DNA of 64,000 nt from the NCBI GenBank assembly GCA_047495785.1, contig JBLDXI010000033.1, positions 1,860,001-1,924,000 on the forward strand. The letters run 5' to 3'. The stretch's first letter is position 1; each line of letters opens with the position of its first letter. The DNA is from Lepidodermella squamata (taxonomy: Eukaryota; Animalia; Gastrotricha). Positions 1 to 34,135 of the stretch are shown one piece after another. The position numbers were made by a program, and so were the translations under genes. The notes beneath the pieces are model-generated. The model was not told the DNA's origin. It worked only from the letters and a program-made list of their open reading frames with translations, and ran no database searches.

Positions 1-919
1 TGTTATTTTGAAAGCCTCTGACATGCAAACTTTGATGATTGCCTATACTGTGCCAGCTGCTGTTGCATTGTTGGTCACTTTAGTTTCATTGACAAGTTCG
101 AAACCACCCATCCCACCATCAGAAAGTGCCGAGCAGGAATCCGAACCGTTTGTTCAAGGTTTCAAAGCCGTTGTTCGTAACAAACAGTTTTTACTTCTGA
201 TGGTTTGTTTCGGGACTGGAATGGCTATTTTCACTGCATTGACAGCATTAATTCTCCAAATTCTGTGCCCTAGTGGATATGACGAGAATTTTGCCGGTAT
301 TGTGACGGGAGTCATGGTCGGGTCAGGTTTAGTTGGTGCTGCAATCACTGGCGTGCTAGCTGATATTACGAAAAAGTTTGCCGAAGTGGCTAAAATCTCT
401 CTCAGTCTAGCAGGAATTTTCTTCTGCCTCTTTACTGTTGTTAACGTTTTCCCGCAAGAATACGTATTGGTTGCAATTGTAGTTGGCCTATTCGGATTTT
501 TCGGTTTCGGCCAATATGCAATTTGTTTGGAAATGGCAGTAGAAACTACGTTTCCCGTCGCCGAAGCTACGGCGACTGGCCTTCTCGTAATATGTGGCCA
601 AGTTCAGTCAGCTATTGTTGTGCTAGTAATGCAGCCTCTTGGTATTCAGACCGAGGACAGGTTCGGTACCTGCTCGGCAAACGCCCTTCAAGGCTCATCC
701 GTTCTCAGCTATATTTATGGAAATATGCTACTTGCTATCATGGCCACCGCGGCAGGTGTTTCACTCATTTGCTTCTACGATTGCCCGTACAAGAGATTAG
801 CTTTTGAAAAGAATAAATCGAAAAAGGCAGAATCCCACGTGAATCCACTCCCTTCTCCAGCTGACGCTGCCTACGATGATGCTTATGCCTACGCCAAAGC
901 CAATCCAATTGTTGAGTAA
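1..919 (+). CDS. MFS transporter, SLC49 family (MFSD7/SLC49A3- or DIRC2-like), 5'-partial
   Basis: Multiple hydrophobic helices; motifs QILCPSGY, LEMAVETTFPVAE and CPYKRL resemble the SLC49 C-terminal half; ORF is open at the window edge. Confidence 0.8.
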   Translation, partial: VILKASDMQTLMIAYTVPAAVALLVTLVSLTSSKPPIPPSESAEQESEPFVQGFKAVVRNKQFLLLMVCFGTGMAIFTALTALILQILCPSGYDENFAGIVTGVMVGSGLVGAAITGVLADITKKFAEVAKISLSLAGIFFCLFTVVNVFPQEYVLVAIVVGLFGFFGFGQYAICLEMAVETTFPVAEATATGLLVICGQVQSAIVVLVMQPLGIQTEDRFGTCSANALQGSSVLSYIYGNMLLAIMATAAGVSLICFYDCPYKRLAFEKNKSKKAESHVNPLPSPADAAYDDAYAYAKANPIVE

Positions 920-1080: not shown

Positions 1081-2803
1081 ATGATAACTTGGCTGAGTGT
1101 TATATTTACTGCCTTTGCATGTGTCTATGCGAAGCAAAGCGTTGAGGAATTTCTGTCGAGTGGCGACCACACAAATAATTGGGCGGTAATTGTCGATACC
1201 AGTCGATTTTGGTTTAATTACCGCCACGAGGCGAATGCCCTCTCAATTTACCGCTCAGTAAAACGACTCGGCATTCCCGATAGTCACATTATCCTCATGT
1301 TGGCGGATGACATGGCGTGTGATCCTCGTAACTCTCGACCGGCTGCAATTTTCAACAACGCCCGGCAACAAATCGACGTTTATGGCTTGGATGTCGAGGT
1401 AGATTACCGCGGATATGAAGTTACTGCTGAAAATTTCGTTCGAGTCCTCACCGGCCGGCTTGCTCACGAAACTCCGCGTTCTAAACGCCTGTTATCTGAT
1501 GATTCTAGCAACGTTTTACTTTACATGACTGGCCATGGTGGTAATGGATTCATCAAATTTCAAGATTCTGAGGAAATCAGCTCGGACGAGTAAGTTTCAG
1601 TCGGTATTACTTGATGTTTTTAGTTTTTAATATCATTACATTAATTTGGGCGCCAGGAGATATTCCCAGAACGAATTATTTAAAGCAGGTTAAATTTAGG
1701 TTGCGACTTTCCGGACTGGACCACAAATGATAAAATTGTGGATAAGTGGGTATCAAGTCAAGTTATAACAATTACATTGAGTGGGCGAAGATAAGGCGGA
1801 TGTTCCAGGCGCAGGCATAATATCAGTTTTCTCGTAGACTACTTTTTTCATGATATTAAAATGGGTACAAAGGGCTGAACTCGTCAACTCAAAATGTTAC
1901 AGAAGTTTCAGGGCCTTTGAAGGATAAATTAAAAGATCATTTTTTTGTTCCTGGTGAAGACAGAAAAACTGCTCATATTACGGTATGAGCAAAGCTACGC
2001 GAGAAGACGAGCTTTTGGGCAATTGAAATAGTCTTTTTGATTGAGTGCCGAATTTCCTCTCTTGGTAAGAGGGTCCATGAATCTCCCTCAAGTTCCCGTC
2101 TCTCTGAGTTTAATTTTTCGAGGAATTATTTAACACTTCGGTTTATACGATCATAACGGTTAAATGAGGAGTACATTGGAATCGATTTTTTTTCAGATTG
2201 GTCGATGTTTTCGAGCAAATGCGTCGCAAAAAGCGTTATAAGGAACTGCTATTCATGGTTGATACATGCCAGGCTGAATCTCTCTTCCTACCTGCCTATT
2301 CAATGGGCTTAGCCGCTGTAGGCAGCAGCCGAGTCGGGGAAGATTCTCTTTCCCACCACACGGACCCTTCAATCGGAGTTTACGTAATCGATCGATTCAC
2401 GTATTACCTCCTCGAATTTCTCGAACGTGTCCGACCTGCCCCAGCTTCGTCAACCGCAGTTTCATCCTCGTCGTCGGGCCAGCGCAAAATAATTGGACCA
2501 GTGCTGTGGGACATGTTTAACGCATGCCCGGCGCACCTGTGTGTGTCTCACGTGACTGTGCGAACAGATCTCTACACGCGTAACCCGCGTGAAGTACCGG
2601 TGCTAGACTTTTTCGGCGCATCGCATCGCGTTGTTTTGACGGAAAAACCGGCGAAAAACGTGCTCACAAAGCAGCAACAGGAGCAAGTAGTTGCGAAGAA
2701 TGAAAGCGGCAAAACTGCGCAACAAACTGCATACGCTCGACAATCGTCATTTTTAACGGCTGAGGCCTTCATTCCCGGCGCCACGGCTTCATACTCGTTT
2801 TAG
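1081..2803 (+). CDS. PIGK: GPI-anchor transamidase catalytic subunit (GPI8), 2 exons: 1081-1589, 2198-2803
   Basis: Signal peptide; [16 protein letters not shown], catalytic GHG and DTCQA; GT..AG intron 1590-2197 joins in frame (SDE-LVDVF). Confidence 0.97.
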
Positions 2804-5236: not shown

Positions 5237-6952
5237 CTACACTTCACTTTGAGTTGGCGCGGACGTCGTCGCTGCTTCTTCTTCCGCAGTGCCTAACACC
5301 AGCTCCGGCTCGTCTGGTATGTCGACGAAAGGAAGGATAAACACGGGACGTTGATCAGGATCGGCCGATAACATCGTCACGCAGTCTTCCCACCGTGTCC
5401 AGGCGTCCTCGGCAGTTGAAAGAACGGCGTCAGACACGTCTGGCTCTGATATTACGCATCGAGAAACAATGCCAGTCACTCCTGGAAATCGACTGTTTGG
5501 CAGTCGAATAGTGTCGACGTCGATTTCAGTTTTGCAAACTTCCATTTTGTCGTCTTCGACCTCATCAATTTCGTCATCTGCTATGGTAGCCTGACGAAAC
5601 GAGGCTGAAAGAAATCTGTACAAGTCGCCGGTTGACAGGCGCGCGTAGTCTAAAGAAATAACAAGGTTATTGAAATACAATAACTTCAATCACGTAACTA
5701 ACCGCCTGGAAATACAAATTTTGAGTCTGTTGGAGGTCCCGAAGTATCCGGTTCAGGTGTAAGAGATTGATGAGCTGAAGCCGGTGTTAATGGCATATCT
5801 GAAGGAGTCACAGAAGAATCAAGGAAACGTTTCACCATTTCACTCTTCTCAGCCGATAGCAATTTTGCACCGCTAGGAGCCGAGCGAGAATCTTCTGCGA
5901 TATCAATGCCTTCCTTGGCAGCAGCTTGCACTGATGCCATCATGACCATCGTTCGTGGTGAAGGCGAGTTATCATAATCGATTGTCGAATTGGAAGCGCG
6001 TTTTTTGCCTCGTTTGCCTCGCTCGTGGCCGAACATTACAGGAGCGGGTATGGGTTCAGCTGTAGGCGGCAGCGGCTGTTTTTCGAGCTGCCTCTCCATT
6101 TTTTCTTTGATCTCAGAGCTGAGACTGAGCTGCGTTTTTTGTTGCAACTCCATGGCAATTTCAGCAGTCGTTTTGATGCGCCTCTTTTGTGGCTCGGGCT
6201 GTGAAGGCACAGGGGAAGGAGCAATCTGAGGCACAGGTCCGTTCCTAATAACAATCGGCAACGCGGGTGACAATGAGGATTCATTTGTATCGAGAGGCTT
6301 CGCCCCGAGTTTAATTCTTAGAGAAAGGCCAGGTTTTGCTTGTATTGTGGTGGTAGTAGTTGTTGTTGTTGATGGAGGAGGTACCACTGTTACTGGCGCA
6401 GCAATTTTGGCGACTAAATTTTGCCCGTTGCCGACAGAAGAAGAAACAGGGCTGTTACTATCACAGTTACTATTTGCAACGCTTTCGTTGTCATCGGGTT
6501 TCCGCTTGTGATTACTGATGTGTGAGGATGGAACTCCCGGATTAGATTGAGTTCCCGATACTACCGAGGTGGCAGTCACGGCTTGCTCAACAACAGCTTG
6601 CCATTTCTTGATTAGAGATTTTGACAGTTTTGCGATTGCGTTATCATTCGTACGCTTTCGCATACTATTAACATATCGGCCGATACGAGTCTCCTATAAT
6701 TGGCCAATGTTTAAGTATACAGGAATGAATAATCATTCATATCCTCTAGTACCTCAAGATCATCCTTTGAAAGTTCGAAGTTTTCGAGTATTTTTAAAAC
6801 GTCCCGCACGACTCCCATGTCGATAATCTAGATGCAAGGTGAAGAATAGAACCTGAATGAAGTCAATCAACTTGAATGAAACTCACATTTCCGTCTGAGT
6901 CGATTCCCTTCAGCAATTTCTCTTTGAGGGAGTTAGCAGTATAAACTGACAT
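5237..6952 (-). CDS. MED26: Mediator subunit 26, exons 6952-6887, 6827-6753, 6693-5703, 5649-5237 (~514 aa)
   Basis: N-terminal TFIIS-N-like domain (LEETRIGRYVNSMRK...KSLIKKWQ), long low-complexity middle, Med26 C-terminal ILPFV motif; spliced frame is continuous. Confidence 0.85.
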
Positions 6953-8113
6953 CGGCGCAATGGTCATTGGACCATAACATGAGATGCAACGACTATCATG
7001 CAATTTTAAAATAATTCTCTAACTAGGTGCTGGCTGCGTGGCCACTGCTTGGGTGTAACAATTGCTCGTTTATCTGTCGTTTAATTAAATTGGCTTCTAT
7101 TCAATTTCAAAATTGTAAATCAGAACCTGCTGGTTGACTTCCACAAGTTACACACAGGACTAGGGCTCAACAGCAGACTGAATAAACCCCTGCCGAAATA
7201 AGTCATTTTGCGCACCCAGCTATTTTCAAATTTTCATAAACATATGTCAAGGACTTTTAGCATATATATTGGCAAAATAATAATCCATTTTATTTGTTAA
7301 GTAAAACTCCAATTTTTATAAAAATTTTGCCGCAGCTCATTTTTCCCCGCCTACGCAGCCACGTTTCACGTTCGTCTGGAGACCCTTCCGTTGAGCCTTG
7401 AGCCCTTAGCCCATAGCACCCTTGGTCCAGGGCTCTGCTTACCTTATGCGCTCAGGTACCTGTTGATCTAGTGAATCTTGTGTGATAGTCCGGGTTGCAT
7501 TGATTAACACTAGTTTATGGATACCTTATTTTTGTTAGTTTTTGAACTTCCTTATTCCTTGCGTTATTCCTCACCTCCTTTTGCTTGATGTAAATTGTAT
7601 GTCGCAGCTTTCTACAAACCACGAATTTAGGTTGTTCATGGTTGCGATTTGCTGACTGCTGATTTCTTGGGTTAATATCCAAAGCTAGATAACATGTATT
7701 TCGTTTGCTGTCAATTTTGAATGCATTCGAGTTATCTTGACCAGCGGTCGAACTGGAGTAACCTACGAAGTAAGGGCGAATCGAGTCGTCCAAACTTAGT
7801 TGGAATGTGATTCTCTTTTTTTAAAATACTCATTTTATTTGGTTTCAGGCCGCGATTTTTTACATCCATAGACATATACAATCGCAAGATTATGTTTTCA
7901 GTCGAATTGCGTGGTTCCTTTAAGTGGCCTTTCATAAAAATGTGCGGGTGCTATGTGATTCTTCCTGTTGCATTTTGCAGTCTTGGTTGCGTCGTTTTAT
8001 TTTACTAAAATTATTTTCCTCTGTCATTTCTTTCCCTTACTGACTATTAGTTTATACATCAGGAGCGTTAGACCTCGTTATCATGAATCCTCACATTGCA
8101 AGTTTTGATTAAT
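6953..8113. promoter_or_regulatory. Probable bidirectional promoter region between MED26 and the ATG13 gene cluster
   Basis: Divergent gene heads; repeated TGAGCC/TAGCCC motifs at ~7161-7171 (-) and ~7390-7412 (+); candidate 5'UTR donor CTCAG|GTACC at ~7455. Confidence 0.45.
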
Positions 8114-8115
8114 TA

Positions 8116-8964
8116 CTGTAGGCGCGAAAATTTTCGCGGGGCTAATATTTTCGCGGACGGCTCATTTTGGGGGTTGGTAAAATTTTCGCGCGTTTAATTT
8201 TCGCGGATGATAGGTTCCTGAGCGCTTTTCTGGGTTTCACGGCAGAAATTTTGCCTTGGGTTTTTTCGCGTTTTAGGAAGTTTTCTGAGAGCCCATCTGT
8301 AACTGCCGGATGGGTGACGACTTTGCGACTTAGCATCATCGTCGGCGTCATCATCTTGATCGTATTAAACTTGTTGAAGCTATTGCTTGCAAATCGTGTC
8401 CTCCTGCACATACCGTCAACTGGGGTGACTTGGTGGGGCGACTTTAGCATAGCAAATCTCGAATTTAGCCAGGCTGATACCCCTTGAGTGGGGTACCGTT
8501 GGATAGCTGGCATGAAAGGCAGCCCAAATATGATAGATTTTAATCATTTCGATCCCACCTGCTTAACTGCGGAGTCATCGAAATTTTGTCATAAACCGAA
8601 TTTTCCCATGAGCTTTACCTGTTACATGTCTTGAATCATGAGGCAAGGCAATCGATTGACGTCTAGTATAGACATCTATGCATGCCTTTACTAGGGCTAT
8701 CTAACAGTACCCCACTACCTTCGAGATTTGCTATGCTAAAGTCGCCCCACCAGCTTAAGTCTCCCCAGTTGACGGTAATTCTTCGATCTTGGCGATTTTT
8801 TGTGTTGCGCGTTGCGGTTATGTGTGTGTTAAAACTGCCTTTATTTTTCGCGAGTTCTAAATTTTCGCGTGGTTAAAATTATCGCGGGTAAAATTTCGCG
8901 GAAAAAATTTTGCCCTCGCGAAAAACGCGAAAATTTTACACAGCGAAAATTTTCGCTTCTACAG
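8116..8964. mobile_element. Non-autonomous TIR DNA element (MITE), TA target duplication, Tc1/mariner-type; interrupted by a second MITE
   Basis: Ends CTGTAGGCGCGAAAATTTTCGC / GCGAAAATTTTCGCTTCTACAG; TA at 8114-15 and 8965-66; many subterminal AATTTTCGCG repeats. Confidence 0.9.
8413..8775. mobile_element. MITE (CCGTCAACTGGGG family) nested in the 8116-8964 element
   Basis: TIRs CCGTCAACTGGGG.GACTT..GGTGGGGCGACTTTAGCATAGCAAATCTCGA; TA TSD; internal sequence matches 20135-20560. Confidence 0.92.
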
Positions 8965-9003
8965 TAATCTTGATCTACTTATTTTGTATAGGCAAAACTG
9001 TTT

Positions 9004-10470
9004 ATGGCAGGTTTCTCAAATTTTGAGCAAGATTCGCGGTTGAAGGAATTGGACAAGTATGCTAAGTTCTTCGTTAGCAAATGTGTCTGCGCTATTTCGA
9101 CTTCGAGAATAACAAACAAGGCGATAAGTACGCCGTCTCGTCAACCGTCCGAGAAAAATGAATGGTTCTCTATCACTCTGCCTCAAGAGCCTGCACCTGC
9201 TAAACAGCAGTCTGCCTCCTCCATTTCCTTTCGAAATGTCTCACCCTCGCCTGATGGCACATCCTGCTGTTGTCACTGTTCTGTAGATGTGTTTGTTGAA
9301 ACGACTTCTGGAGAAAAACTGATCGTGGAGACTTGGTGCATCGTCTTGGAACGGATCGACGGATTCGGTTATCGTTCAGCTTCATCCGCTCCCAGACAGG
9401 AGCCATTCAAAATTTACGCTCGTCTGGGCTTGTTATTAAAATCAGTTGTTGCGACGGCTAGATTATTACCGGCCAACCGCTTAGCACGAACACAATCGGC
9501 TACTTCCTATACCATAAGCTGCCGTGTAGAATCTGGGGCGGGATCTGGTCCATTAGAACATACTAGTCTGCGTCTTCGCCACAGCATTGGCAGTGTAGAC
9601 GTGGAACCGATAGGTCGGGTATCAGTCAGAGTTGCTTATTGCTCTGAGGCTGTGTTAACAGATTGTGCGATGGGCGCCTCTTCCCTCGGAATATCTATTC
9701 AGAACGAGCAACAGCAAAGGAAAGCTTCTGTCAGCTCGGTGACAAGAACAGAGAGCTACACAATTTTACCTTCATCAGCTTCGAAAAACATGCCGCGTGA
9801 CAGCTCTATAATATCGTTAGCAAATATGTCTGAAAGGGCACCATCGACTATACCCGTTTCTGAGGTGATCACGCCAACGTGCAACACACCCACTCAGATG
9901 TCGATGGTTAAACCTCCCGTGCCGCATACTGTAATCCCGGCGTTTTCTGCTGTATCCCCTGGTTTACCTCTTCCATCCCTCGATTCTTCGTTCACGTCGT
10001 CGGTTGATTCACTAGAACTAAATGGCAGCCCAACGAAAAAACAGCAACAATCGTCGTATGATTTGTCATTAGCGGATGAAATTTTAGCTGACTTTGCATT
10101 GGTTCAATCTACATCGTTCCCGTTCGCTAACCTCGAGGAACCTCTAGCGACGTTTGTTTCGTTGTTGGGTGCCACTGAAGAAAAAGTTCAAGTCAAGACC
10201 ACCTACGAACAACGGCAGTCATTTTTACAGTTTTCAACGCAGCAACAGCCAGCTGATTTAGGGGCGATTATTCCGCCCCCGGCGTTGCCAAACCTAGAAG
10301 ATCAAGTTCAACTGAACTCTCATCTGACCGAAATGCAAAACGTCCAAAGTGCTTTCGACGCACTTGTGGCCAGTTTATGTGATGATGGAAGTGGCAGTAT
10401 TGGCAATAGTAACAACAAGTTAGCTTCAGCTACCAACAAAATCGCCTTCCAGCTGGGCGTTGATTCCTGA
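9004..10470 (+). CDS. ATG13: Autophagy-related protein 13, single exon
   Basis: N-terminal HORMA-like region (ELDKYAKFF..., NEWFSI, VETW, IYARLGLLLKS..ARLLPA.RLAR) followed by an S/P-rich disordered region. Confidence 0.9.
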   Translation: MAGFSNFEQDSRLKELDKYAKFFVSKCVCAISTSRITNKAISTPSRQPSEKNEWFSITLPQEPAPAKQQSASSISFRNVSPSPDGTSCCCHCSVDVFVETTSGEKLIVETWCIVLERIDGFGYRSASSAPRQEPFKIYARLGLLLKSVVATARLLPANRLARTQSATSYTISCRVESGAGSGPLEHTSLRLRHSIGSVDVEPIGRVSVRVAYCSEAVLTDCAMGASSLGISIQNEQQQRKASVSSVTRTESYTILPSSASKNMPRDSSIISLANMSERAPSTIPVSEVITPTCNTPTQMSMVKPPVPHTVIPAFSAVSPGLPLPSLDSSFTSSVDSLELNGSPTKKQQQSSYDLSLADEILADFALVQSTSFPFANLEEPLATFVSLLGATEEKVQVKTTYEQRQSFLQFSTQQQPADLGAIIPPPALPNLEDQVQLNSHLTEMQNVQSAFDALVASLCDDGSGSIGNSNNKLASATNKIAFQLGVDS

Positions 10471-10690
10471 TGACCTCAATTATCCGCAAATATGATTCAT
10501 TTATATAGACCCAGTTATCCGCCTTTATTCTTACTGTTACTATATTATTTCAAACAAATGATGATTGCTAAATTTTGCTATTCAAGTTTTACTTGAGCAT
10601 GAGGGAAACGATTGTTTGCAACAAATAAACCGAAATAAGTTATAAATGACTAACCATTTTTTGTTTGCTAACTGTAGATAGTATTTAAAA

Positions 10691-11263
10691 ATGCGGGTTC
10701 CTACTGAATGGAAGGAGCTGAAGAAGGTGCTGCCCGTTGGCTCTGTCGCGATTGGTAAATACCGCGACAAGCAGTTTCGGGGTGCTAAGCTTGAGTACTA
10801 CAAAAAGCTGCTGAACACCACCACCCTTTACATTGGTAATTTGTCGTTTTACACGACTGAAGAACAGATCTACGAGCTGTTCAGTAAATGCGGTGGGGTC
10901 AGGCGTGTAATTATGGGACTGGATCGCTACCAGAAAACACCATGCGGTTTCTGCTTTGTGGAGTATTACTCGCGACAGGTTTTTACTTGAAAAGCTTCAA
11001 AATAAGGAAACCTCCTTAATAACCAATTTCAGGGCTGCGAAGGAGCGCTTCGCTATATCAACGGATTGCGCCTTGACGACCGCGTAATTCGAGTTGATTG
11101 GGACGCCGGGTTCGAGGAAGGCCGTCAATTCGGCCGAGGACGTTCGGGCGGTCAGGTCCGCGACGAAGTTCGCAACGATTTCGACTCTGGCCGTGGCGGC
11201 TGGGGTAAACTCATCCAGCAGCGTCTTGAAAAGGACGACAAACCCGGTGACGCTATGGAATAG
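10691..11263 (+). CDS. NCBP2: Nuclear cap-binding protein subunit 2 (CBP20), exons 10691-10978, 11033-11263
   Basis: [66 protein letters not shown]; 54-nt intron. Confidence 0.98.
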
Positions 11264-11370
11264 TCTCATGCGCATTTTTTTTACAGTCGCACTTTCATTG
11301 TAGTCTCTCATTAAACTTCAGTTTGGCTCATTTAATTTTCATAGTTTTCTATAGATTTTATCACGTAAAA

Positions 11371-11889
11371 ATGACCGACCGTTTGATAGTTGTCGTTGAA
11401 ATCAAAGAAGGATACCCGTCACCCCTTGCGGTGTTTGGTTACCAAGTAAAATCGCCTAATGGAACTCAATCTTATGAAATTGGAGACCTGGTCGAGGTCG
11501 ATCTTTTAAATGGCACGACGAGTCGTGCCCGCGTGAAGGAAATTTTCAAGCAGGATCTGACCTCATTTTGCATGAAGCGGTTTGTGAAGGTCGAAAACGG
11601 TGAAGGGGTGCCGTACGATCGAAGTCTCGGCCTCGAAATCGGCTCGTCAGAAACACGCGTCAGGTCTTCGCTACTGAGTTGCGCAGGCCGGCTGAATCTC
11701 GGTTCTTCCGATTCGAAATCTACATTGGCTCAATGTGTTGAGTCGATGCGGCAGCGTCAGACTGCGCCAGCGAGAAATAGCGGCCAATCATCATCATCAT
11801 CATCGGCAATATCGATAACTCAGCCGCCGCCGCCTCCGTTAAACGAATCAGTTCGTTCGCTGTTGCGAGAGCCAAACAACAGGCGATAA
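11371..11889 (+). CDS. Hypothetical protein (~172 aa), beta-rich N-terminus and S/P-rich tail
   Basis: AAAAATG start after a TATAG acceptor, coding-like composition, AATAAA at ~11943; fills the gap between NCBP2 and HLCS; no family recognised. Confidence 0.7.
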   Translation: MTDRLIVVVEIKEGYPSPLAVFGYQVKSPNGTQSYEIGDLVEVDLLNGTTSRARVKEIFKQDLTSFCMKRFVKVENGEGVPYDRSLGLEIGSSETRVRSSLLSCAGRLNLGSSDSKSTLAQCVESMRQRQTAPARNSGQSSSSSSAISITQPPPPPLNESVRSLLREPNNRR

Positions 11890-12028
11890 TATAATCAATC
11901 ACGCATCTTTTTTGCTCACCTTCCATTTTTTCTACTCAAGGAAATAAATCTGTTTATAGTAATTGGAAACACAAGCAGATTTTTCATATTTTTTCTCACA
12001 TCGTTTTTTATTAGACTGTTATCAGTTA

Positions 12029-14121
12029 ATGTCTTTGATGGCCTGTGTTATCATTTCCAGGCTTACCAACTATGCCGCGAAGGGACTGGTGTCTTCTTTC
12101 TACGTCGGCTCAACTCGTCATTTCGCAACCTCGAATGCTTCGCCGCCGAACGTTGTGATTTACGCGTCTGATAACGAGGCGAAACAATTTAAAATCAGCG
12201 CGTTACTGCAACGAGTTTTCTCCCCAGATTCGCTGGCGATTTACCCGCTGAATCGCGAGTCTTTACTCAAACAAGACGCAGCGTGGTTGCAGAATGTCCG
12301 CGGCCTCGTTCTTGACGACTGCGAACGACTCAGCCGAGAGGAAGCTGCCCGTATTCTCGCGTTTTTCAAACAAGGTGGCCGAATTTTGGACCTCGGCTCT
12401 AATCTGTGCAAACACCTCGGAATTGGCCGAGGCGATGCTGTTTTGGAAAAAGAAGCCGAACGTCCGGTGACTAAACTGAACAACGAAATTGTCGTTCGAG
12501 CGAAAGGCTTCTTCTCTCCGCAAATTTTGAAGCTGAAACCAGAGGAAATGGTGCTTAGACCTGTCCTGAAAGATTCGCAGAACAAAATTTTAGCCGTCGA
12601 AGTTGCGCATAATCCGTCGAAAGGCAGGGCTGTGCTGAGCAGAATTCAGTTCCACCTTAATGCAGAGGATCTTCAACTTCAAGATCGCGAACAATTCGAG
12701 GCTCAAACTTCAAACCGAGACGGGGTTATTTTAGACCTGTTCAAACGACTTGAATTCGTCCCGAAAAATTATTCGAAAACCGCAACTCAGGCGAAACCGG
12801 TGAAAAGTAACGTCGAAATCGGTCCTGATTCGATTGTTGTGTTTGGCAAACAAGCCTCTCGAGTTGTTGGCGCGTTGCAATCTGTCGATAAATATAAAGG
12901 AATTTCAGCCGGTGATGATAAATCGACTGGTTTTGATCAGAAGTCGTACTTTTCGGCATTGAAGACTCGTTTAGTTGGCAATACTGTGATTTACCAGCAG
13001 ACATGTTCAACTACGATGGATCTGGTTAAGGCGGCTCGTAATCACGTTGAGGCGAAAGAAATTAATTTGATTGGTATAACTGATCGGCAAACTAGCGGTC
13101 TAGGCCGGGGTGGGAATAAATGGCTGAGCCCTCCCGGTTGCGCTATGTTCACGTATAATTTCACGGTTGATCCAAATTCAGGTCTAGGCCGTCGGTTACC
13201 CCTAGTCCAATCAATCGCAGCTCTCAGTTGCGTTCAAGCGATCAAGGATCATATCAAGAAAAATTCGAAGACTGCCGAAATTGATGTTCGTATTAAATGG
13301 CCGAACGATATTTACGTTGACGGTAAGACCAAGATTGGCGGAATTCTTGTCAATAGCACGATTCTTGGCTCATTGATGCATTGCTCGATCGGTATCGGTT
13401 TGAATTTGTCGAATGACGAGCCGACGGTTTGCTTGAATCGCATTTTCGCGGCTAATGGCGTTCCGGCGATGTCTCGCGAGCAGCTTATCGCGTCGATTTT
13501 GAACAATTTCGAAGTTAACGCTGATGCTGTGAATGCGTTTAGGCTCAATGAGGTGATTGAGAATTACTGCAGCAATTGGTTACATACCGATCAACGTGTT
13601 GTTGTGCGAGATGAATGTCAAACTGATTACTGCACCGTACCTCTTAGGAGAGTGCCTCAGCCTATCAATGTTAAAGGTGAGCTTTCAGTCGGATTTATTG
13701 CGAAAAAATGGAAATTAAGGAGGACTTTTTAATTTTATTTAAATCTATGCATTAATATTTGAATAATTAATTTCCAACCATTTTTGCGTGATCGAGAATT
13801 CAAGTTTCCATCCTAATTCCGAGTTTTTCAAATTTCAACTGATTTAATTTTGATGAAATTTCAGCTGAACCGCCGAGTTCTCTGCGGTCTGGCTACGTCC
13901 GTCGAATCGACGAATTCGGTTATTTGGTCGTTGAATTTCAAGACCGCAGCCTTGCCTCGTTGCACCCAGATGGCAACTCATTCGATGCTATGAACGGTCT
14001 CATCTTGCCAAAGCTTACTCAACCACCGACCGAGTCAACCGCTGACCAGGTGCCAAAACTCGGCGATAATGACTACCCGAGGACGAACAACGTTCGAGGC
14101 ATGGTCTACCAAGTTCGCTAA
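12029..14121 (+). CDS. HLCS: Holocarboxylase synthetase / biotin-protein ligase, exons 12029-13676, 13866-14121
   Basis: QTSGLGRGGNKWLSPPGCAMF, KWPNDIY, KIGGILV, IDEFGYLVV, LHPDGNSFD; mitochondrial-presequence-like N-terminus. Confidence 0.96.
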
Positions 14122-14245
14122 AATAACTCGATAAATTCGACCTCAGAAAATATGATAATAAAAGTGCTAGTATAATAGCGTAATAAATTTTATACAAATT
14201 TCCTCAATTTTGCTTCAAAATCCTGTAGAATTTAGTAGAGCAAAA

Positions 14246-17199
14246 ATGTCCGGCAGATATGGGTTGCGGTCTAGTAATATTGGCGCAGCGTCGACTCCTG
14301 GTGTGTTCAAATCACCGAGTAAAATTTTGGCTGATCAACTCTCGTCATTCTCACTCGGTGGCAGCGAGGAGCCAGCAGCCGCTGAAGATGCGACTGATAA
14401 GAAGTTGCGATCTGCGTTCAGAAATGGCCGCAAAAGCATAATGAAGGAAAATAATCTGTCGGCTCCATTTGGCGGAACTCCAACGGTTACTGCGACTAAT
14501 TTCAATAAAACACCGTCTCCACCGAAGGAGGATGTAGCCCCAAAAGCGCCCTCTTCAGCTAGCACTAGAGGCGCAGCTCGATCGGCCAAACCAGCTGCAG
14601 TCAAAACCCTAGCGGCTCTTCATACTAGGCCGGACCCGGTACCTGTCAAGGCTCGAAAATCCGTTTCTCCCATCCCGGCTGAAAAGCCGGTTGTGAAGGA
14701 AATTCCGGTTAAGGAGGCTAAAGTTGAAGACATCGACCCGCGTTATCGCGACGCTATGTTACCTTCTTTCACGTCATTCGGCCGGAAGAAAACAGCTGCT
14801 CCTTCTGCGAAGCGGCGTGGTAGGAAACAAACTCTCGATGCTGTCGCTAGGGAGGGCGAAGAACCGATTGAAAATGAAGAAGATGCGAAAGCGAAACCCG
14901 TTAAGCTGCCGCCCGTAGACTTGTCCTGGTTGAATATCGACGATTTGGCTGATCTCATCGTGCCTGAATTGGAAAATCGGCGTCTAGTTGCCGATCAACT
15001 GATGCGTCGCTATCGCAGCGAATTTGGCAAGTGGGTCGTCCAATTACTGGCTGGTTTCAACATTCTTTGCCATGGTTTGGGGTCGAAACGGGCGTTGCTA
15101 ACTGAATTTTGTGACACCAAGCTGGTTCCAGGCGGGTTCAATGTTATCGAGTTGGACGGCTGGCGGCCTGATTTCAACTTCTCGGATTTTATTAAGGAAT
15201 TATTTTTCGGATATTGCCGACAAACTGAAGAATTGAAGCTTTCAGATGCTGAAATGGTAAGTTTTTCTAGTCATTTTTTGGTGATTTTTCATGCTTTGAG
15301 TGTCTTTTAAGTAAAGTAGCCAGAGAAAGTAGAGAGAACAGTAGTCGCATACCTAAATAACAGGGGCGATTTCCATTTCATAGTCTCAATATGTCATGCT
15401 GGCATAAAACTTGTCAATCTGAATGAAAAAATCGGAAGAAATTCTGTGAAATCAGGTAAAATACGGATAAATACCGAAAGATTCCCATCGGTTTTTTTCC
15501 GCCGAAATGCAAATAACCGAAAAAATTAAGCTTAGTAGGAAATTCACGAAAAATAATTCCAAGAAGAACTAGCGTATGAGGTGATGAGCTCGTGGCTCAG
15601 ATATTCCGAAATCGTGGATATAGAAAACGTCACTGCAAATTAGACGCAGACGCGTGGTAGCAAGCATCGTTTGATAATTCTCGGTCTCTGACATTCATCA
15701 GATACTCAGTATATTTCGGCAGCCAACGCCGAGGTCGCCCGGAATGCGACTTTCGATCGGTTCTACGAAACGAGCTGACTACTTCGGAAGCAAATGAAGG
15801 ATGGACACTTCGCGCTGACCATTTATCAACCATTTAAATCGGAAGTCGTAAATCGAGAGCTATAACAAAGAGACTCTCATTGCTCAATGATTTGGGTTAA
15901 TCTAGTTTTTAGAGCCTAGAAACTAGGAACTAGGTAGGTAGAAAGGCCTGCGCTTCCCGTTCGGCGAAGCAGGACGCAGAATTTCTTCGAAACTGTTCGA
16001 TTTCGATCGATCGAGTGTTGATCAAAGAAAAGCGCAGTTTTTCCAATCGCCCGAGAGATCCGAGCACAATCTTTGCCCCAAACGGTGGCTTTAATGAGAA
16101 TCGAGCCGTCAGTAACAAAATGTCCCGCATTCTCGAGTGGAGAAAAACTTATTTATTGAGGATTTCTGATACGCCAAAATTCGAACCCACATAATGAGAT
16201 TCAGCAGGATTTCGTGGTTCCGATACTTTGACTGCAGCGTTGTAAATGATGGTTTCTAAGGCGAAAGAAACAGTTCGATTGCAGCCGCCCGTTCAAGACG
16301 CTCAGATAAAAACAACCACAAACAAATTAATTACCTCGAAGCCAAATTTTTCAAAAAAGTTGGAAAAAAATCAAGATGTATTTTCGCAACTTATGATAAC
16401 CTGTATTTATTTGTAGATCAGCCGCGTCGAGAGTTACCTGGACACAAACCCGGCTCACCTGGTCATTTTAGTGCACAGCATTGACGGGGTGGAGATTCGC
16501 GGTAATCGGAAATTCCACACCACCCTAGCAAATTTGGCGAAACTCGACCGAGTTCACATAATCGCAAGTGCCGATCACGTTAATTTCCCCCTTATGTGGG
16601 ACACGGCTACGGTGGAAAATTTCAATTGGATCTACGCTGAAACGCCGACTTTCGAACCTCCGGTCGCAGAATCTCGAGCTAACGAGTGCTCATTGCTCAG
16701 GTCGATTTTACGTGCTCATTCGACAACTGGAGCTCATGTTACACTGACCTCGGTTCGCCACGTCGTATTCAGTTTAACGCCAAATGCGATCAAAATGTTC
16801 ATCCTTCTGTGTTACTGTTTCGTCGAAAAACAAGCGCGAAGAACTGCGGCGAAAAAAGCGAAAAAGGGCCGTAAAAAGGGCGCTGATGCTATGGATGACG
16901 ATGCTGCGGTTGCTAATGACGACGAAAACATGCAAGCCTCAGATTTGCTACTGCCATTATCTGATTTGTACAAGCACTGCCGTGATCAGTTCATTGTTTC
17001 AAGTTACGAATTGATGTTGAAGCACTTGCGTGAGTTGTTCGACCACACGCTGGCTAAACAGGTGAAGCACCCGGATGATGGGGCTGATTGCCTGCAGATG
17101 AACATGAGCGGCGAGTTGGCCGGTTCCTTCCTCGAAGAATGCCGCGCCGGTGAATATGCTCAATTTTTGGACTCGCTTTCTACGGATATTGAACTCTGA
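14246..17199 (+). CDS. ORC2: Origin recognition complex subunit 2, exons 14246-15256, 16417-17199
   Basis: W..QLLAGFNILCHGLGSKR, HSIDG, IIASADHVNFPLMWD, SLTPNA, LRELFDH. Confidence 0.95.
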
Positions 17200-17380
17200 A
17201 ATCGTATCTCCTCTCTCTTCCTTTCATCGTTTGCATGCTTTCATTCAATTTTCTGAGTTTTAATCAACGTTCTGTCTTGACGCCGAATTACATAATTGCC
17301 AACTGATTTGATCAATTTTTTCTAAGGCCTTAGGTTATTAATATCCTTTATTGGATCACCCTGCGTTCGGTGACTTGAAA

Positions 17381-19039
17381 ATGGTGAGTCAAATGATTTT
17401 AAGGTGGATTTTTTTAGTTTTATTAATTTATTAATTGTTCTTTCAGCGTCCTATAAAATTGAACGGGCATCGTCGTGAAATTACGCGTGTGCGTTACAAC
17501 GCAGATGGTGATCTGCTGTTCTCGGCCTCGGCCGATCCGCCCATTTGCGTGTGGTACACGAATACGGGCGAGCGTCTTGGAACTTATGAAATCAGTGGTG
17601 CCGTTTTCGATCTTGACACGACATGTAAGCTCATTTCCAGTTATATTTTAGAATTTAGAATTTCAAGTTTAAGGCGGAATTGTTATTTTACACGGATTTT
17701 TTAGTTTAATATCTTGAATTGAACAAGTACAGTAGTTTAATCTGGTTGGTGTTGCTGTTGAGGTTGCTGCTGAGGCTCTGAATTAAAAAAGTTCAAGCTC
17801 TGAAGTTTAAGAAACAAAATCAATAATAGTTATGTATAGCCTCCGAAAAGCGCCGGGCGAAATTCTAGGGATTCTCGTGGTGACGAATGTCCCACGAGCG
17901 CATAAGGACGTTGAGTTTCGACGTGGGATCACAGTCCGTAAAATAGGCACTCAACGTATCCCAACGTGATTTAGAAGTCGTGCAGCCGGGGAGCAATTGG
18001 CAGAGCGAGTCGTCGATATGCGACATGATCCACAGAGACGAGTGAGCATTTTTACACTTCACGCCTGTTCTTGGACAGGATCAGGATCAGTTACATGTGC
18101 AGTACTGACGACGGCACTCAATATTTCTTTGTAAAAATAGAGGCTCGTTACGCGTTACGACAGTTGAATTTGCTATATTCCTGATTTTTTTCTTATATTT
18201 TTTATTTTTTATTTTAAGATGATACCAAAATGCTTTGCGCTGCCGGCTATCAGAACGTGACAGTTTTCGACTGCGAAACCGGTGCTCAGCTGGGAAAACT
18301 CTCGACGGGCAGTGCCATCAACAAAGCGTGCGGTTTCTCCATGTCCGGCAAAATGGTCATGGCGTGCCGGAAGCCGCAGCGCAGCGAAAAAAGCAAACTG
18401 TTCATTTTCGACATCCGCGACGGCTCGCAACTCGGCGAAAACCCGAACCCGTCCTTCTCAGTCGAACTGACCCAGGGCGACTCGGGCGACGAGTGCAGCG
18501 TCGCGTCCTGGGCCGGCCTCGACACGCAGGTCCTCGTCGGCATGGGCAACGGCGACCTGCAAATGTGGGACATCCGAACGGCCCAGTCGCGCCCAGAACC
18601 CGTTATCAGCGTGAAACGCGCGCACGACGCGTCGATTTCCGACCTGCAGCTGTCCCGCGACCAGACGATGGTGGTCACGTGCGCGCCCGACGGCACGGCG
18701 AAGATGTGGGGCGCGTTCCAGCTCGACCCGTTCCGGTCGTTCAAGGCCGACCGTCCGCTCAACTCGATCGCGATTTCGCCGACGAAGCCGCACATTTTGA
18801 CGGGCGGCGGTCAGCTGGCGCGTGATGTCGCCTTAACGGGTGGCATGGGCCAGTTCGAGGCGCTGTTCTACCACCTGATTTTCGAGGACATGTTCGCTAA
18901 GGTGAAGGACCATTTCGGTCCGATCCGGTCGCTGGCGTTCCAGCCGGACGGCACCGGCTACGCCTCCGGGGCCCACGACGGTATGATCTTCCTGCACAAA
19001 TTCGACGCAAGCTACGACAAGTACGAACTCGAGTATTAA
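17381..19039 (+). CDS. EIF3I: Translation initiation factor 3 subunit I (WD40), exons 17381-17383 (ATG only), 17447-17624, 18219-19039
   Basis: MRPIKLNGH..ITRVRYNADGDLLFS, GERLGTY, GGGQLARDV, VKDHFGPIRSLAFQPDG. Confidence 0.95.
17820..18110 (-). mobile_element. Probable Ty1/copia gag remnant in eIF3i intron 2, antisense to host
   Basis: Translation LWIMSHIDDSLCQLLPGCTTSKSRWDTLSAYF resembles the copia gag (UBN2-type) 'I..SIDD....CTTAK..WD.L' motif; flanked by stops. Confidence 0.5.
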
Positions 19040-31578: not shown

Positions 31579-32787
31579 TCACAACTGCACGGTCGGCTTG
31601 CCGAAAACAGCTTGGTAAACCTCTTCCTCGGTGAATTCAACCACCACCCGGGTGTAGGTAGGTAGATCTTCTCGCTTGACCAGCTTGTACTTTAGCGAAT
31701 TCAGCCCATCCGTGTGCATTCTTTGTACAGTTTTCCGCAATAAAGCCATTCGATTTTCATTGGCAGCGTTTTCCTTTTCATGTTCATGCTTGAACATTTT
31801 GTACCGTAAAATCTCCTTCTCGTAACGCATAATCGGCAGTTTTAGGTGGACGAGACGGTCGTGGAAATCATCGTCTTCCCCACCCCAGCCGAAAAATACG
31901 TTGGAGTAACCGTTTATCAGCTCGAAGTGTTGTTTTGGGACAGCAGAAGCGCCGCCGAAAATCGCGGCATACGGGATTTTATAGTCGAAAACGTTGATAT
32001 ATCCGCTAAGGTGAATAGATTTGTCACTGCAGGTGTAAATTCCTCGGTCATCTTCTGGCAAGAGGTCGACGTCATGGAAAATGTAGCACTGAAACTGACG
32101 GCCGTTATCCAAGAGCTTTAGCGATTCCTTGTAACCAATATTCATCAGCATCGCTCGATTGAACTTATTCGTCCCCGCCTGGTCGACAATGATAATGACG
32201 TATTCCAGTAGCTGGCGTTGTAAAATTGGATGCATGTGGTGTAAAAAGCCGCGTAATTGGCCTTCGCGGTTACGATAAGGCACTATTATCGCAGTTGGGC
32301 CGTTCCGAGGGTTGCAATCTGGCGGTCGGTACCGCCCACCTGGTTTGAGCAAAGGGTTCTCTTTCGCTATTTCATCAAAGGTCGGTTGCTCAAAATTGAC
32401 AGCCAGTGCGCCGACCAATTTCGGTGGCGATTCAGGGCACATCGGTAATTCTTCCACAGATACAGTTGTTACAGGTAAAGAAGACGTTGTCTCATAATTC
32501 TTCGTAGTATTAATGATTTCAGCAGCTTTTGTGATTAGTTCAGACGATTTCTCTTGAAAAACCGGTGCTATGGTGATTACTGGCCCAGATGTTCTAAGCC
32601 GAACAGTACTTGGGACTTCGCTCCATTCGTCCGTAAAGCTTTGCCGCAAAAATGCGACAGACGCTTCGTTGAACCAACTAGACCAGTTTACGAAGAAAAG
32701 CACCCAGATAATCGCAATAATAACCGTAGCAGCTAATCCAGTTCTTAATAGATAAAATGTGCCTCCAAATTTACCGGTCACTTGCAT
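31579..32787 (-). CDS. GT7 beta-1,4-N-acetylgalactosaminyltransferase (bre-4 / beta4GalNAcTA-like), single exon, type II membrane
   Basis: N-terminal TM; IIVPYRNR, FNRAMLMN, FHDVD, PYAAIFGG, FGWGGEDDD; Ile at the donor-specificity position (Tyr289 of bovine beta4GalT1). Confidence 0.92.
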   Translation of the reverse strand: MQVTGKFGGTFYLLRTGLAATVIIAIIWVLFFVNWSSWFNEASVAFLRQSFTDEWSEVPSTVRLRTSGPVITIAPVFQEKSSELITKAAEIINTTKNYETTSSLPVTTVSVEELPMCPESPPKLVGALAVNFEQPTFDEIAKENPLLKPGGRYRPPDCNPRNGPTAIIVPYRNREGQLRGFLHHMHPILQRQLLEYVIIIVDQAGTNKFNRAMLMNIGYKESLKLLDNGRQFQCYIFHDVDLLPEDDRGIYTCSDKSIHLSGYINVFDYKIPYAAIFGGASAVPKQHFELINGYSNVFFGWGGEDDDFHDRLVHLKLPIMRYEKEILRYKMFKHEHEKENAANENRMALLRKTVQRMHTDGLNSLKYKLVKREDLPTYTRVVVEFTEEEVYQAVFGKPTVQL

Positions 32788-32845
32788 TAAAGTAAAATTA
32801 TCTATAAAACGAAAAAACGTGGCAATGAGTAAAATGATGGAAAGT

Positions 32846-34135
32846 TTATCGTCTTTTGCCGCCGCGCTTGAGCACACCCTTTAGACCCTGTGCTGAATCT
32901 TCCAAAGCTTGAAGTGCCAAATCTAAATCGTCGTAGGTATGACTAACAGAAATGTCGACCCTCAAACGACCGCCGTTAAACGGAACCAGGGGAGGAAGGG
33001 GGCACCCGACTTCAATGCCTCTCTGTAGTAGACGTTTATGCATCAATCTAGCGTGATTAGCAGTATCAGTCAAATTCTTGTGAAGTCTTTCGTGCTTCTC
33101 AGGATCGGCAACTGGGTGGTGGAGCAGAATGTTGATTGCCGGGTGTTCGCGGACATCGCCGATTGTGTGAAAGCCAATCGCAGTCAACGCGGAGCGGAAA
33201 TATTCAACCTTTTGGCGTAAATCTGTCAACAATTTACTGTTGATGTCCGGTTGGGCGAAATGCTGTAAAGCTTTAGAAGCATTCACAGCGATGCCAGGGC
33301 AAACTGACTGCGAGCGAGAGTAAGCTATCGATGAATATCGAACGCATGAAAGAAGTGAGCTGGACGAAGATGTAACGTAACCACAGGGAGGTTGACCGAA
33401 AGTCTGCTCAAAGCCTCCTATAATAACATCGGCCAGATCTTCGACATTGTTGTAGTTTTCCAAGCCGCGACCTTCTTTGCCCAGCAATCCTAGGTTATTC
33501 GCGTCAATTAAAACTAAACAAGCGGGGTCATACAAAGATATCAGCTTCCCGATCTCAACCAAAGGTGGCACATTGGAACCAAGCTCGAAAAAACCATCGG
33601 TGAATACGAATTTCAAGCGGCAATGAGCTGTATCAACGTTCAGCTTTCTCTCAAGATCTAGCAAATCACAGTTGTTGTATGTCAAAACGCATTTGGCTCG
33701 GCTGGCTCGAGCTGCGATAGCGCTGATTGGCCGACTAAATGCATCGATCAAAACAGCGTCATCTGCGGTGATAAGGGCAGTGAACACCGACCAAATAGCG
33801 TGGTCGAACGACTGAGTAACAATAGATTCTTGACGGCCATAAAATTGGGCAACATCATTCTCCAGATTTGATACAGCTAACCCAGGAGGACCTAAGGCAG
33901 GCTGTCGGCTGGAAGTTGATATGTTTTCTTTTGACCAGTCAGTTTTATGACTAAATCCCAAGTAGTCATTGGTGCAAAATGATAACAATGATTTAGGATT
34001 GGTAAGATGATTGATAGCATAATCTGATCGACCGCAGTCAGGAACTTTCCTTTGATTGCGCAGGACAGCAGCTGAGCTATCAAAGATTCTTTCGACATGT
34101 TCGGCCAGGCGATATAGTGGCCTAGTAACTTTCAT
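32846..34135 (-). CDS. Divergent GCAT/KBL-like alpha-oxoamine synthase family protein lacking the PLP lysine
   Basis: FCTNDYLG, DDAVLID, RLKFVFTDG, LGKEGRG, PLVP..GRLRVDIS..H follow GCAT; TLGKA is replaced by GFEQT; intact ~429-aa ORF. Confidence 0.8.
   Translation of the reverse strand: MKVTRPLYRLAEHVERIFDSSAAVLRNQRKVPDCGRSDYAINHLTNPKSLLSFCTNDYLGFSHKTDWSKENISTSSRQPALGPPGLAVSNLENDVAQFYGRQESIVTQSFDHAIWSVFTALITADDAVLIDAFSRPISAIAARASRAKCVLTYNNCDLLDLERKLNVDTAHCRLKFVFTDGFFELGSNVPPLVEIGKLISLYDPACLVLIDANNLGLLGKEGRGLENYNNVEDLADVIIGGFEQTFGQPPCGYVTSSSSSLLSCVRYSSIAYSRSQSVCPGIAVNASKALQHFAQPDINSKLLTDLRQKVEYFRSALTAIGFHTIGDVREHPAINILLHHPVADPEKHERLHKNLTDTANHARLMHKRLLQRGIEVGCPLPPLVPFNGGRLRVDISVSHTYDDLDLALQALEDSAQGLKGVLKRGGKRR

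Follow-up and report, generated by a model that had tools for sequence, protein, structure and literature searches.

A spliced leader and a six-gene, most likely worm-style operon in the gastrotrich Lepidodermella squamata

In a 64-kb stretch of the genome of the gastrotrich Lepidodermella squamata (contig JBLDXI010000033.1, positions 1,860,001 to 1,924,000; the "window", with positions counted from its first letter), six unrelated plus-strand housekeeping genes, ATG13, NCBP2, an orphan gene, HLCS, ORC2 and eIF3i, follow one another with stop-to-ATG gaps of 220, 107, 139, 124 and 181 nucleotides (nt). The mRNA of the first of these genes begins with a spliced leader (SL) that the locus does not encode, and at three junctions the 3′ end of the upstream message lies 22 to 29 nt before the acceptor of the next gene. 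SL operons are recognized as two or more same-strand genes at very short intercistronic distance, and the cluster presents this arrangement with six genes. We consider it likely that the six constitute a single transcription unit, an operon resolved by SL addition as in Oikopleura or chaetognaths, and thus most likely a worm-style operon in a gastrotrich lineage for which operons had not previously been described.

The transcript evidence comes from assembled contigs of three runs, which we aligned to positions 8700-14600 (5.9 kb) and which match the locus at 95-100% identity. Two of the runs, X1 and X3 (the latter dated 2014), carry poly(A) tails and are joined GT..AG across the NCBP2 and HLCS introns, as RNA would be; the third, X2 (dated 2024), lacks such joints, has a depth of ~81-88 and behaves as DNA. 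The organism label of X1 differs from that of X2 and X3; the sequences differ from one another at the locus by 0.7-1%, plus a hemizygous transposon. The ORC2-eIF3i junction lies outside the aligned stretch. In an X1 contig over 8990-9306, 24 non-genomic letters, ATCTGCGAATTTGATTTGTGTCTA, stand directly before position 8990, and the aligned part begins with the A of an AG preceded by ttattttgtat. Neither this 24-mer (sought on both strands with up to 3 mismatches) nor the leader-donor junction occurs in the window. The ATG13 mRNA thus carries, joined at a 3′ splice-site AG, a 5′ sequence that is not encoded at the locus, which is what defines a spliced leader: this animal trans-splices, and it does so at this locus, on gene 1. 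The full leader was observed on this one mRNA, while NCBP2 shows a 4-letter unaligned stub, discussed below.

The leader also appears as the 5′ exon of a small RNA gene. Scanning public metagenome contigs with the last 20 letters of the leader returned two loci, L002 and L003, both in ribosomal DNA (rDNA), and in both a GT donor directly follows the leader exon. In L003 the sequence reads ...taacc ATCTGCGAATTTGATTTGTGTCTAAG followed directly by GTATGTATCGGCTCC..., that is, a 26-mer and then the consensus 5′ splice site GTATGT, which sets the leader at 26 nt once the AG, left ambiguous by the mRNA alignment, is counted in. This leader is followed 210 nt downstream by a 5S rRNA gene of the same orientation, with the 3′ end of the 28S gene converging on both. 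In the predicted fold of the L003 leader gene (700-812, minus strand), the donor is paired with ACCUUGG. The rDNA unit of L002 is ordered 28S end, 5S, spacer, 18S, and at 2440-2590 (minus strand), between 5S and 18S and in the orientation of the rRNA genes, we observed four tandem leader-like mini-exons, each followed by GTA(T/C)GT. Three of these copies are variant; the last matches the 26-mer exactly, and only after this copy come a hairpin and the Sm-like sequence GAUUUUUUG, 39 nt past the donor (the motif sought was RAU4-6GR). These tandem exons may represent a decaying array or a multi-leader gene. Because gene order, spacer sequence and 28S expansion segments set L002 and L003 apart, they belong to two related species, and since two different but related species share the leader exon, the exon is conserved. 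In the window itself, Rfam returned no SL RNA or other family at the gathering threshold, and no rRNA.

Turning to the genes, the first-pass annotation had read the locus as six same-strand genes; Pfam identifies five of them and RNA contigs cover the orphan, and the gap lengths it gave were reproduced exactly. The coding sequences (CDS) are as follows.

9004-10470, plus strand: ATG13 CDS, single exon, 488 amino acids; Pfam PF10033, E = 5.9e-11; covered by RNA contigs.
10691-10978 and 11033-11263, plus strand: NCBP2 (CBP20) CDS; Pfam RRM_1; 54-nt GT..AG intron, joint seen in X1 and X3.
11371-11889, plus strand: orphan CDS, single exon, 172 amino acids; RNA contigs at 11539-11922 (X1) and 11668-11846 (X3).
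12029-13676 and 13865-14121, plus strand: HLCS (biotin-protein ligase) CDS; Pfam PF03099 (BPL_LplA_LipB), E = 1.8e-24; 188-nt intron, joint seen in X1 and X3.
14246-15256 and 16417-17199, plus strand: ORC2 CDS; Pfam PF04084 in both exons and PF24882 (RecA-like, WHD); 1160-nt intron, across which the frames close.
17381-83, 17447-17624 and 18219-19039, plus strand: eIF3i CDS, 333 amino acids; Pfam PF24805 (EIF3I), E = 3.7e-67.

The features that delimit the messages at the junctions are listed next; those called predicted are read from the sequence alone.

8990-91, plus strand: ATG13 acceptor AG, in the context ttattttgtatAG followed by gcaaaactgtttATG; a 12-nt 5′ untranslated region (UTR) follows the leader.
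10624-29, plus strand: AATAAA of the ATG13 3′ end, poly(A) site at ~10646; X1 loose end of 20 A, the tail starting 22 nt after the signal.
10647-10677, plus strand: intercistronic region 1 including the acceptor; spacer of 29 nt with two CTAAC motifs.
10676-77, plus strand: NCBP2 acceptor AG; alternative AG at 10680-81.
11310-15, plus strand: ATTAAA of the NCBP2 3′ end, poly(A) site at 11330; X1 loose end of 23 A, 15 nt after the signal.
11331-11354, plus strand: intercistronic region 2 including the acceptor; U-rich spacer of 22 nt.
11353-54, plus strand: orphan acceptor AG; alternative AG at 11343-44.
11943-48, plus strand: predicted orphan poly(A) signal, AATAAA; no RNA contig reaches this point.
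12013-14, plus strand: predicted HLCS acceptor AG; alternative AG at 12024-25.
14182-87, plus strand: AATAAA of the HLCS 3′ end, at ~14203; X3 contig end, 16 nt after the signal.
~14203 to 14227, plus strand: HLCS-ORC2 spacer of ~23 nt, from the X3 contig end and the sequence.
14227-28, plus strand: ORC2 acceptor AG; several further AGs follow 14228.
17332-33, plus strand: predicted eIF3i acceptor AG, weaker than the other five; its distance to the ATG is 47 nt.

Thus, three upstream 3′ ends, two of them poly(A) tails and one a contig end, are located 29, 22 and ~23 nt before the next acceptor, and the short spacers in between are made up of branch-point-like (CTAAC) and U-rich sequence. A spacing of 22-29 nt from cleavage site to acceptor, at three junctions, is the diagnostic layout of SL-resolved operons; such short spacing marks operons in every SL trans-splicing animal studied (PMC7986045, PMC2481426, PMC12460157). 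Much of this layout had already been described in the first-pass annotation, and its description agrees with the sequence: the five internal acceptor AGs lie where it placed them, the poly(A) signals that it noted upstream of the acceptor in some gaps are found at 10624, 11310, 11943 and 14182, no strong donor occurs in the gaps, and the CTAAC branch-like motif that it reported before 10676-77 is present in two copies, at 10650-54 and 10668-72. At NCBP2, the alignment of an X3 RNA contig begins at 10676, on the A of the acceptor AG, after 4 letters that do not align. This start is the one predicted by a leader that itself ends in AG, as at 8990.

One further contig end was observed in the 3′UTR of ATG13, where 16 T that the genome does not encode precede 10548 in an X1 RNA contig. 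Read as a poly(A) tail, they would mark the end of a minus-strand RNA in this UTR; there is no minus-strand AATAAA near 10548. Either antisense transcription from gap 1 or an artefact of the library may explain this contig, and the X1 library does contain chimeras, its loose end at 10725 being SMART adapter.

The acceptors also stand out by their sequence and position. We defined an acceptor signature as a YAG (Y, pyrimidine) 5-25 nt upstream of an ATG, whose preceding 18 nt include 12 or more pyrimidines, of which 8 or more are T. In the window as a whole, 81 of 2036 ATGs (4.0%) have this signature, and it is present at all five of the cluster genes that have an ATG-led first coding exon, at distances of 12, 13, 16, 14 and 17 nt. 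The sixth gene, eIF3i, has a bare ATG as its first coding exon (17381-83), directly followed by a 63-nt intron that starts with GTGAGT. The same T-rich tAG is found 5-22 nt before the ATG in other same-strand runs, at 1081, 2219 and 4289 on the plus strand and at 32787 on the minus strand. The acceptor habit is therefore window-wide and not special to the six-gene locus, which looks like one ordinary example of an apparently genome-wide habit. The minus-strand pair at 32787-32850 consists of a GCAT-like gene and then a GalNAc-transferase, with a stop-to-ATG gap of 58 nt and no AATAAA.

Put together as a mechanism, a single transcription unit would start within the ~1.5-2.3 kb upstream of 8990, in the 6.7-8.1 kb region, and would end after 19039, toward a converging minus-strand formin gene, and its primary transcript would be processed into six mRNAs. 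Every junction would see cleavage and polyadenylation of the preceding message ~15-20 nt after A(A/T)TAAA, and ~22-29 nt downstream of the cleavage site a pyrimidine-rich YAG would receive the 26-nt leader from a small RNA supplied in trans, whose gene neighbours 5S rRNA in the rDNA unit. ATG13, the first gene, would likewise be trans-spliced, its transposon-bearing outron being discarded. The products would be six capped mRNAs with the same leader and with 5′UTRs of ~38-43 nt. Of these steps, leader addition to genes 2-6 is suggested by their acceptor sequences, and transcription of all six genes from one promoter is what we infer from the arrangement of the cluster.

Several observations weigh against this model. 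The gene on which the full leader was found is the first of the run, and trans-splicing of a first gene says nothing on co-transcription. Among the assembled contigs aligned to 8700-14600, no listed RNA contig crosses any gap, and X1 depth drops to 0 at 10669, 10689, 11382, 11985 and 12049; the lack of gap-crossing contigs is weak evidence either way, because contigs built from steady-state poly(A)+ RNA need not capture a short-lived precursor. The 4 unaligned letters at NCBP2 could be a cap or adapter residue and not the tail of a leader, and a TATAAA (10641-46) lies ~30 nt before the NCBP2 5′ end. The 181-nt gap between ORC2 and eIF3i lacks a canonical poly(A) signal and would leave a 47-nt UTR. 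As for the donor, an SL RNA gene with an Sm site had been proposed as a check of the first-pass annotation; candidate genes are present in both metagenomic rDNA contigs, with an Sm-like site in L002 but no recognizable one in the L003-type gene, and neither candidate folds better than shuffled sequence. The tie between these genes and the present genome runs through metagenomic contigs and is indirect. Overall, the earlier inference of SL addition to one polycistronic transcript is supported in part, by the ATG13 leader, by the SL RNA gene recovered from the metagenome and by the three junctions of 22-29 nt, and falls short at the NCBP2 stub of only 4 letters and at the missing gap-crossing contig.

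The main alternative is one in which the genes are trans-spliced but not co-transcribed, or form a hybrid operon, so that some or all of genes 2-6 have promoters of their own in the preceding 3′UTR or CDS and the leader merely trims short outrons. Many SL-accepting genes in Hydra, Ciona, rotifers and flatworms are monocistronic. The presence of the leader on the first gene, where it is not specific to downstream genes, would fit such an arrangement, as would the TATAAA and the ambiguous stub at NCBP2, the longer ORC2-eIF3i gap without AATAAA and the contig with 16 T at 10548, if the latter reflects antisense polyadenylated RNA near gap 1, as from a bidirectional promoter. Contig depth also varies up to ~5-fold between genes, although depth is a poor measure. 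However, at three junctions the 3′ end lies only 22-29 nt from the acceptor, with branch-point-like and polypyrimidine sequence in between, and the cluster gaps share no TATA-like or other promoter motif at a constant spacing from their acceptors. We regard this alternative as unlikely.

Considerably less probable still is ordinary tight packing, in which only ATG13 would be trans-spliced, genes 2-6 would start from conventional genomic sites, and the T-rich AGs would be incidental to AT-rich spacers. Such packing would agree with the lack of a full leader at any internal AG, where the NCBP2 contig offers only its 4 unaligned letters. Against this, the acceptor signature is found at 5/5 first exons versus 4% of all ATGs and recurs at the window's other same-strand runs (1081, 2219, 4289, 32787), the NCBP2 contig begins exactly at the A of the AG, just as the ATG13 contig does, and the spacers leave too little room for a promoter and a 5′UTR. 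Finally, that the ATG13 leader is no SL at all, but a distant cis 5′UTR exon or a cDNA or assembly chimera, is hardly credible even though a single contig carries it and the X1 library has SMART-adapter chimeras (10725), because neither a cis exon nor a chimera can jointly explain a join exactly at a polypyrimidine-AG acceptor, a leader whose end coincides, in independent rDNA contigs from two species, with the start of a GTATGT donor, and a donor gene that is small and rDNA-linked. The leader is also absent from 9 kb upstream and 55 kb downstream, and the window contains no rRNA.

The SL-resolved operon is also favored by its surroundings, since opposite-strand genes flank the cluster on both sides. 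The features upstream of and around the cluster are:

6663, minus strand: left boundary, start of a minus-strand open reading frame (ORF), from the ORF map.
6664-8989, plus strand: presumed promoter and outron, between the minus-strand ORF start and the ATG13 acceptor.
8114-8964: terminal inverted repeat (TIR) element of 851 bp, with TIRs of ~39 nt (TACTGTAGGCGCGAAAATTTTCGCGG...), 25 nt upstream of the ATG13 acceptor.
8411-8777: miniature inverted-repeat transposable element (MITE) nested inside the 851-bp TIR element.
22 kb, minus strand: right boundary, formin gene converging on the cluster, with its FH2 domain at 22 kb, from Pfam.

In the X2 DNA contig the site of the 851-bp element is empty, with 8113 joined directly to 8965, and X1 RNA depth is 0 over 8700-8896. 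The element is an insertion polymorphism inside the outron, and because the outron is discarded, the insertion should be harmless. Among the flanking and intronic ORFs, the formin FH2 at 22 kb was the only Pfam match. Two introns, 15257-16416 (1160 nt, ORC2) and 17625-18218 (594 nt, eIF3i), far exceed the 54-188 nt of the other introns; the short minus-strand ORFs within them have no Pfam match, no Rfam family was matched there, and their contents may be degraded elements.

The orphan protein has no Pfam match even at E = 10, no homologue among 5.8 billion clustered proteins and no convincing neighbour in the ESM atlas. Because RNA contigs of two runs cover the gene and no homologue was found, we conclude that it is a transcribed lineage-specific gene. 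Exact-sequence look-up of the two single-exon proteins of the cluster found neither on record. The eIF3i protein is only 57-59% identical to most of its homologues, and its best match, at 84% identity, is encoded on a JGI environmental contig (L001; sample 3300043795, 951 nt) that lacks the 5′ part of the gene. Since this is the closest relative found, a species related to the source animal appears to occur in that sample. The GC content of the window is ~44%; for the published L. squamata genome, a GC content of 43%, 122 Mb in 157 contigs and a heterozygosity of 3% have been reported (PMC11660948). Its DNA data are a single HiFi set from 2024 at 83x, one transcriptome dates from 2014, and its proteins are long-branched. 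As sources of the window, rotifers, chromadorean nematodes, Ciona and Oikopleura were set aside because their leaders differ, Dimorphilus because its genome paper reportedly found neither operons nor trans-splicing, and Hypsibius because the eIF3i search would have matched its public proteome.

Among the SL systems most like this one are the tunicates Oikopleura dioica and Ciona, where, as it appears here, one leader serves first and downstream genes alike and the genes concerned are housekeeping genes. The SL RNA gene of O. dioica is also linked to 5S rRNA. The present system differs from both tunicates in lineage and in the sequence and length (26 nt) of its leader; the candidate SL gene is situated inside the 45S rDNA unit, and leader use by the downstream genes is what we infer here. 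The very short intercistronic regions are a further likeness: against the 22-29 nt found here, the medians are ~31-33 nt in O. dioica, ~1 nt in Ciona and 99-105 bp in Caenorhabditis elegans (PMC7986045). In Oikopleura, Ciona and chaetognaths alike, monocistronic and operonic genes draw on one class of leader (PMC7986045, PMC2481426, PMC12460157). In the chaetognaths Spadella cephaloptera and Paraspadella gotoi, the poly(A) site likewise almost adjoins the acceptor, with 3 nt between the two at RPS14-PCNA (PMC2481426). No leader is reserved for operons in these animals, their SL genes are said often to sit within rDNA clusters, and housekeeping functions are overrepresented among their operons (PMC12460157). 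On the other hand, several leaders are in use there, versus one known here so far, and the one chaetognath leader compared is 36 nt long and unrelated in sequence.

The SL2 operons of C. elegans resemble the cluster in having same-strand housekeeping genes, 3′-end formation coupled to trans-splicing, a first gene that is spliced via an outron, and UUUCAG-like acceptors near the ATG. They differ in their ~100-nt spacers and in a dedicated SL2 family, versus 22-29 nt and one leader known so far. We considered a nematode SL2-type operon and rejected it on these spacers and on a leader that is unlike, and unrelated to, nematode SL1 or SL2. The flatworms Macrostomum lignano and Schistosoma share with our system both SL trans-splicing with operons and a donor directly after the leader; the flatworm SL RNA is ~100 nt, with its donor straight after the leader (PMC8629364). 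The two flatworm leaders compared are 35-36 nt long and end in AUG, whereas the leader described here has 26 nt and ends in CUAAG; with the M. lignano leader it has only CTGCGAA in common, which is not significant (p ~0.18).

Systems of this kind are familiar from other animals; new are the leader, its rDNA-embedded gene and, probably, the phylum. The leader string, in DNA and RNA spellings, was found nowhere in a full-text literature search, nor in the SLIDR paper; among 8.4 million full texts, "spliced leader" or "trans-splicing" appears together with "gastrotrich" only in an unrelated Euglenozoa review, and the terms "intron", "trans-splic" and "operon" are absent from the L. squamata genome paper (PMC11660948). 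It is thus possible, and we put it forward tentatively, that these data are the first molecular evidence of SL trans-splicing and of housekeeping operons in gastrotrichs; they would also introduce an unreported 26-nt leader, whose gene neighbours 5S within the rDNA unit and has been conserved in one or more related species.

Among animals, SL trans-splicing and operons have a patchy distribution, being known from nematodes, tunicates, flatworms, rotifers, chaetognaths and some cnidarians, ctenophores and crustaceans, and whether this reflects many gains or many losses of SL trans-splicing is still debated (PMC12460157, PMC2481426). To this debate the cluster contributes a new data point, from a lineage whose leader is defined, whose SL RNA gene has been located, and whose spacers, at 22-29 nt, are Oikopleura-like; being a gastrotrich lineage, it adjoins the flatworms. 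Flatworms are the sister phylum of gastrotrichs, the two together forming the Rouphozoa. Because this sister phylum also trans-splices, it would, if our reading is true, become testable whether the rouphozoan ancestor already had SL trans-splicing and operons or whether they arose again independently. There is also a consequence for annotation, in that standard gene finders fuse or mis-start operonic genes, and a known leader permits re-annotation of the whole L. squamata genome by SLIDR/SLOPPR-type analysis.

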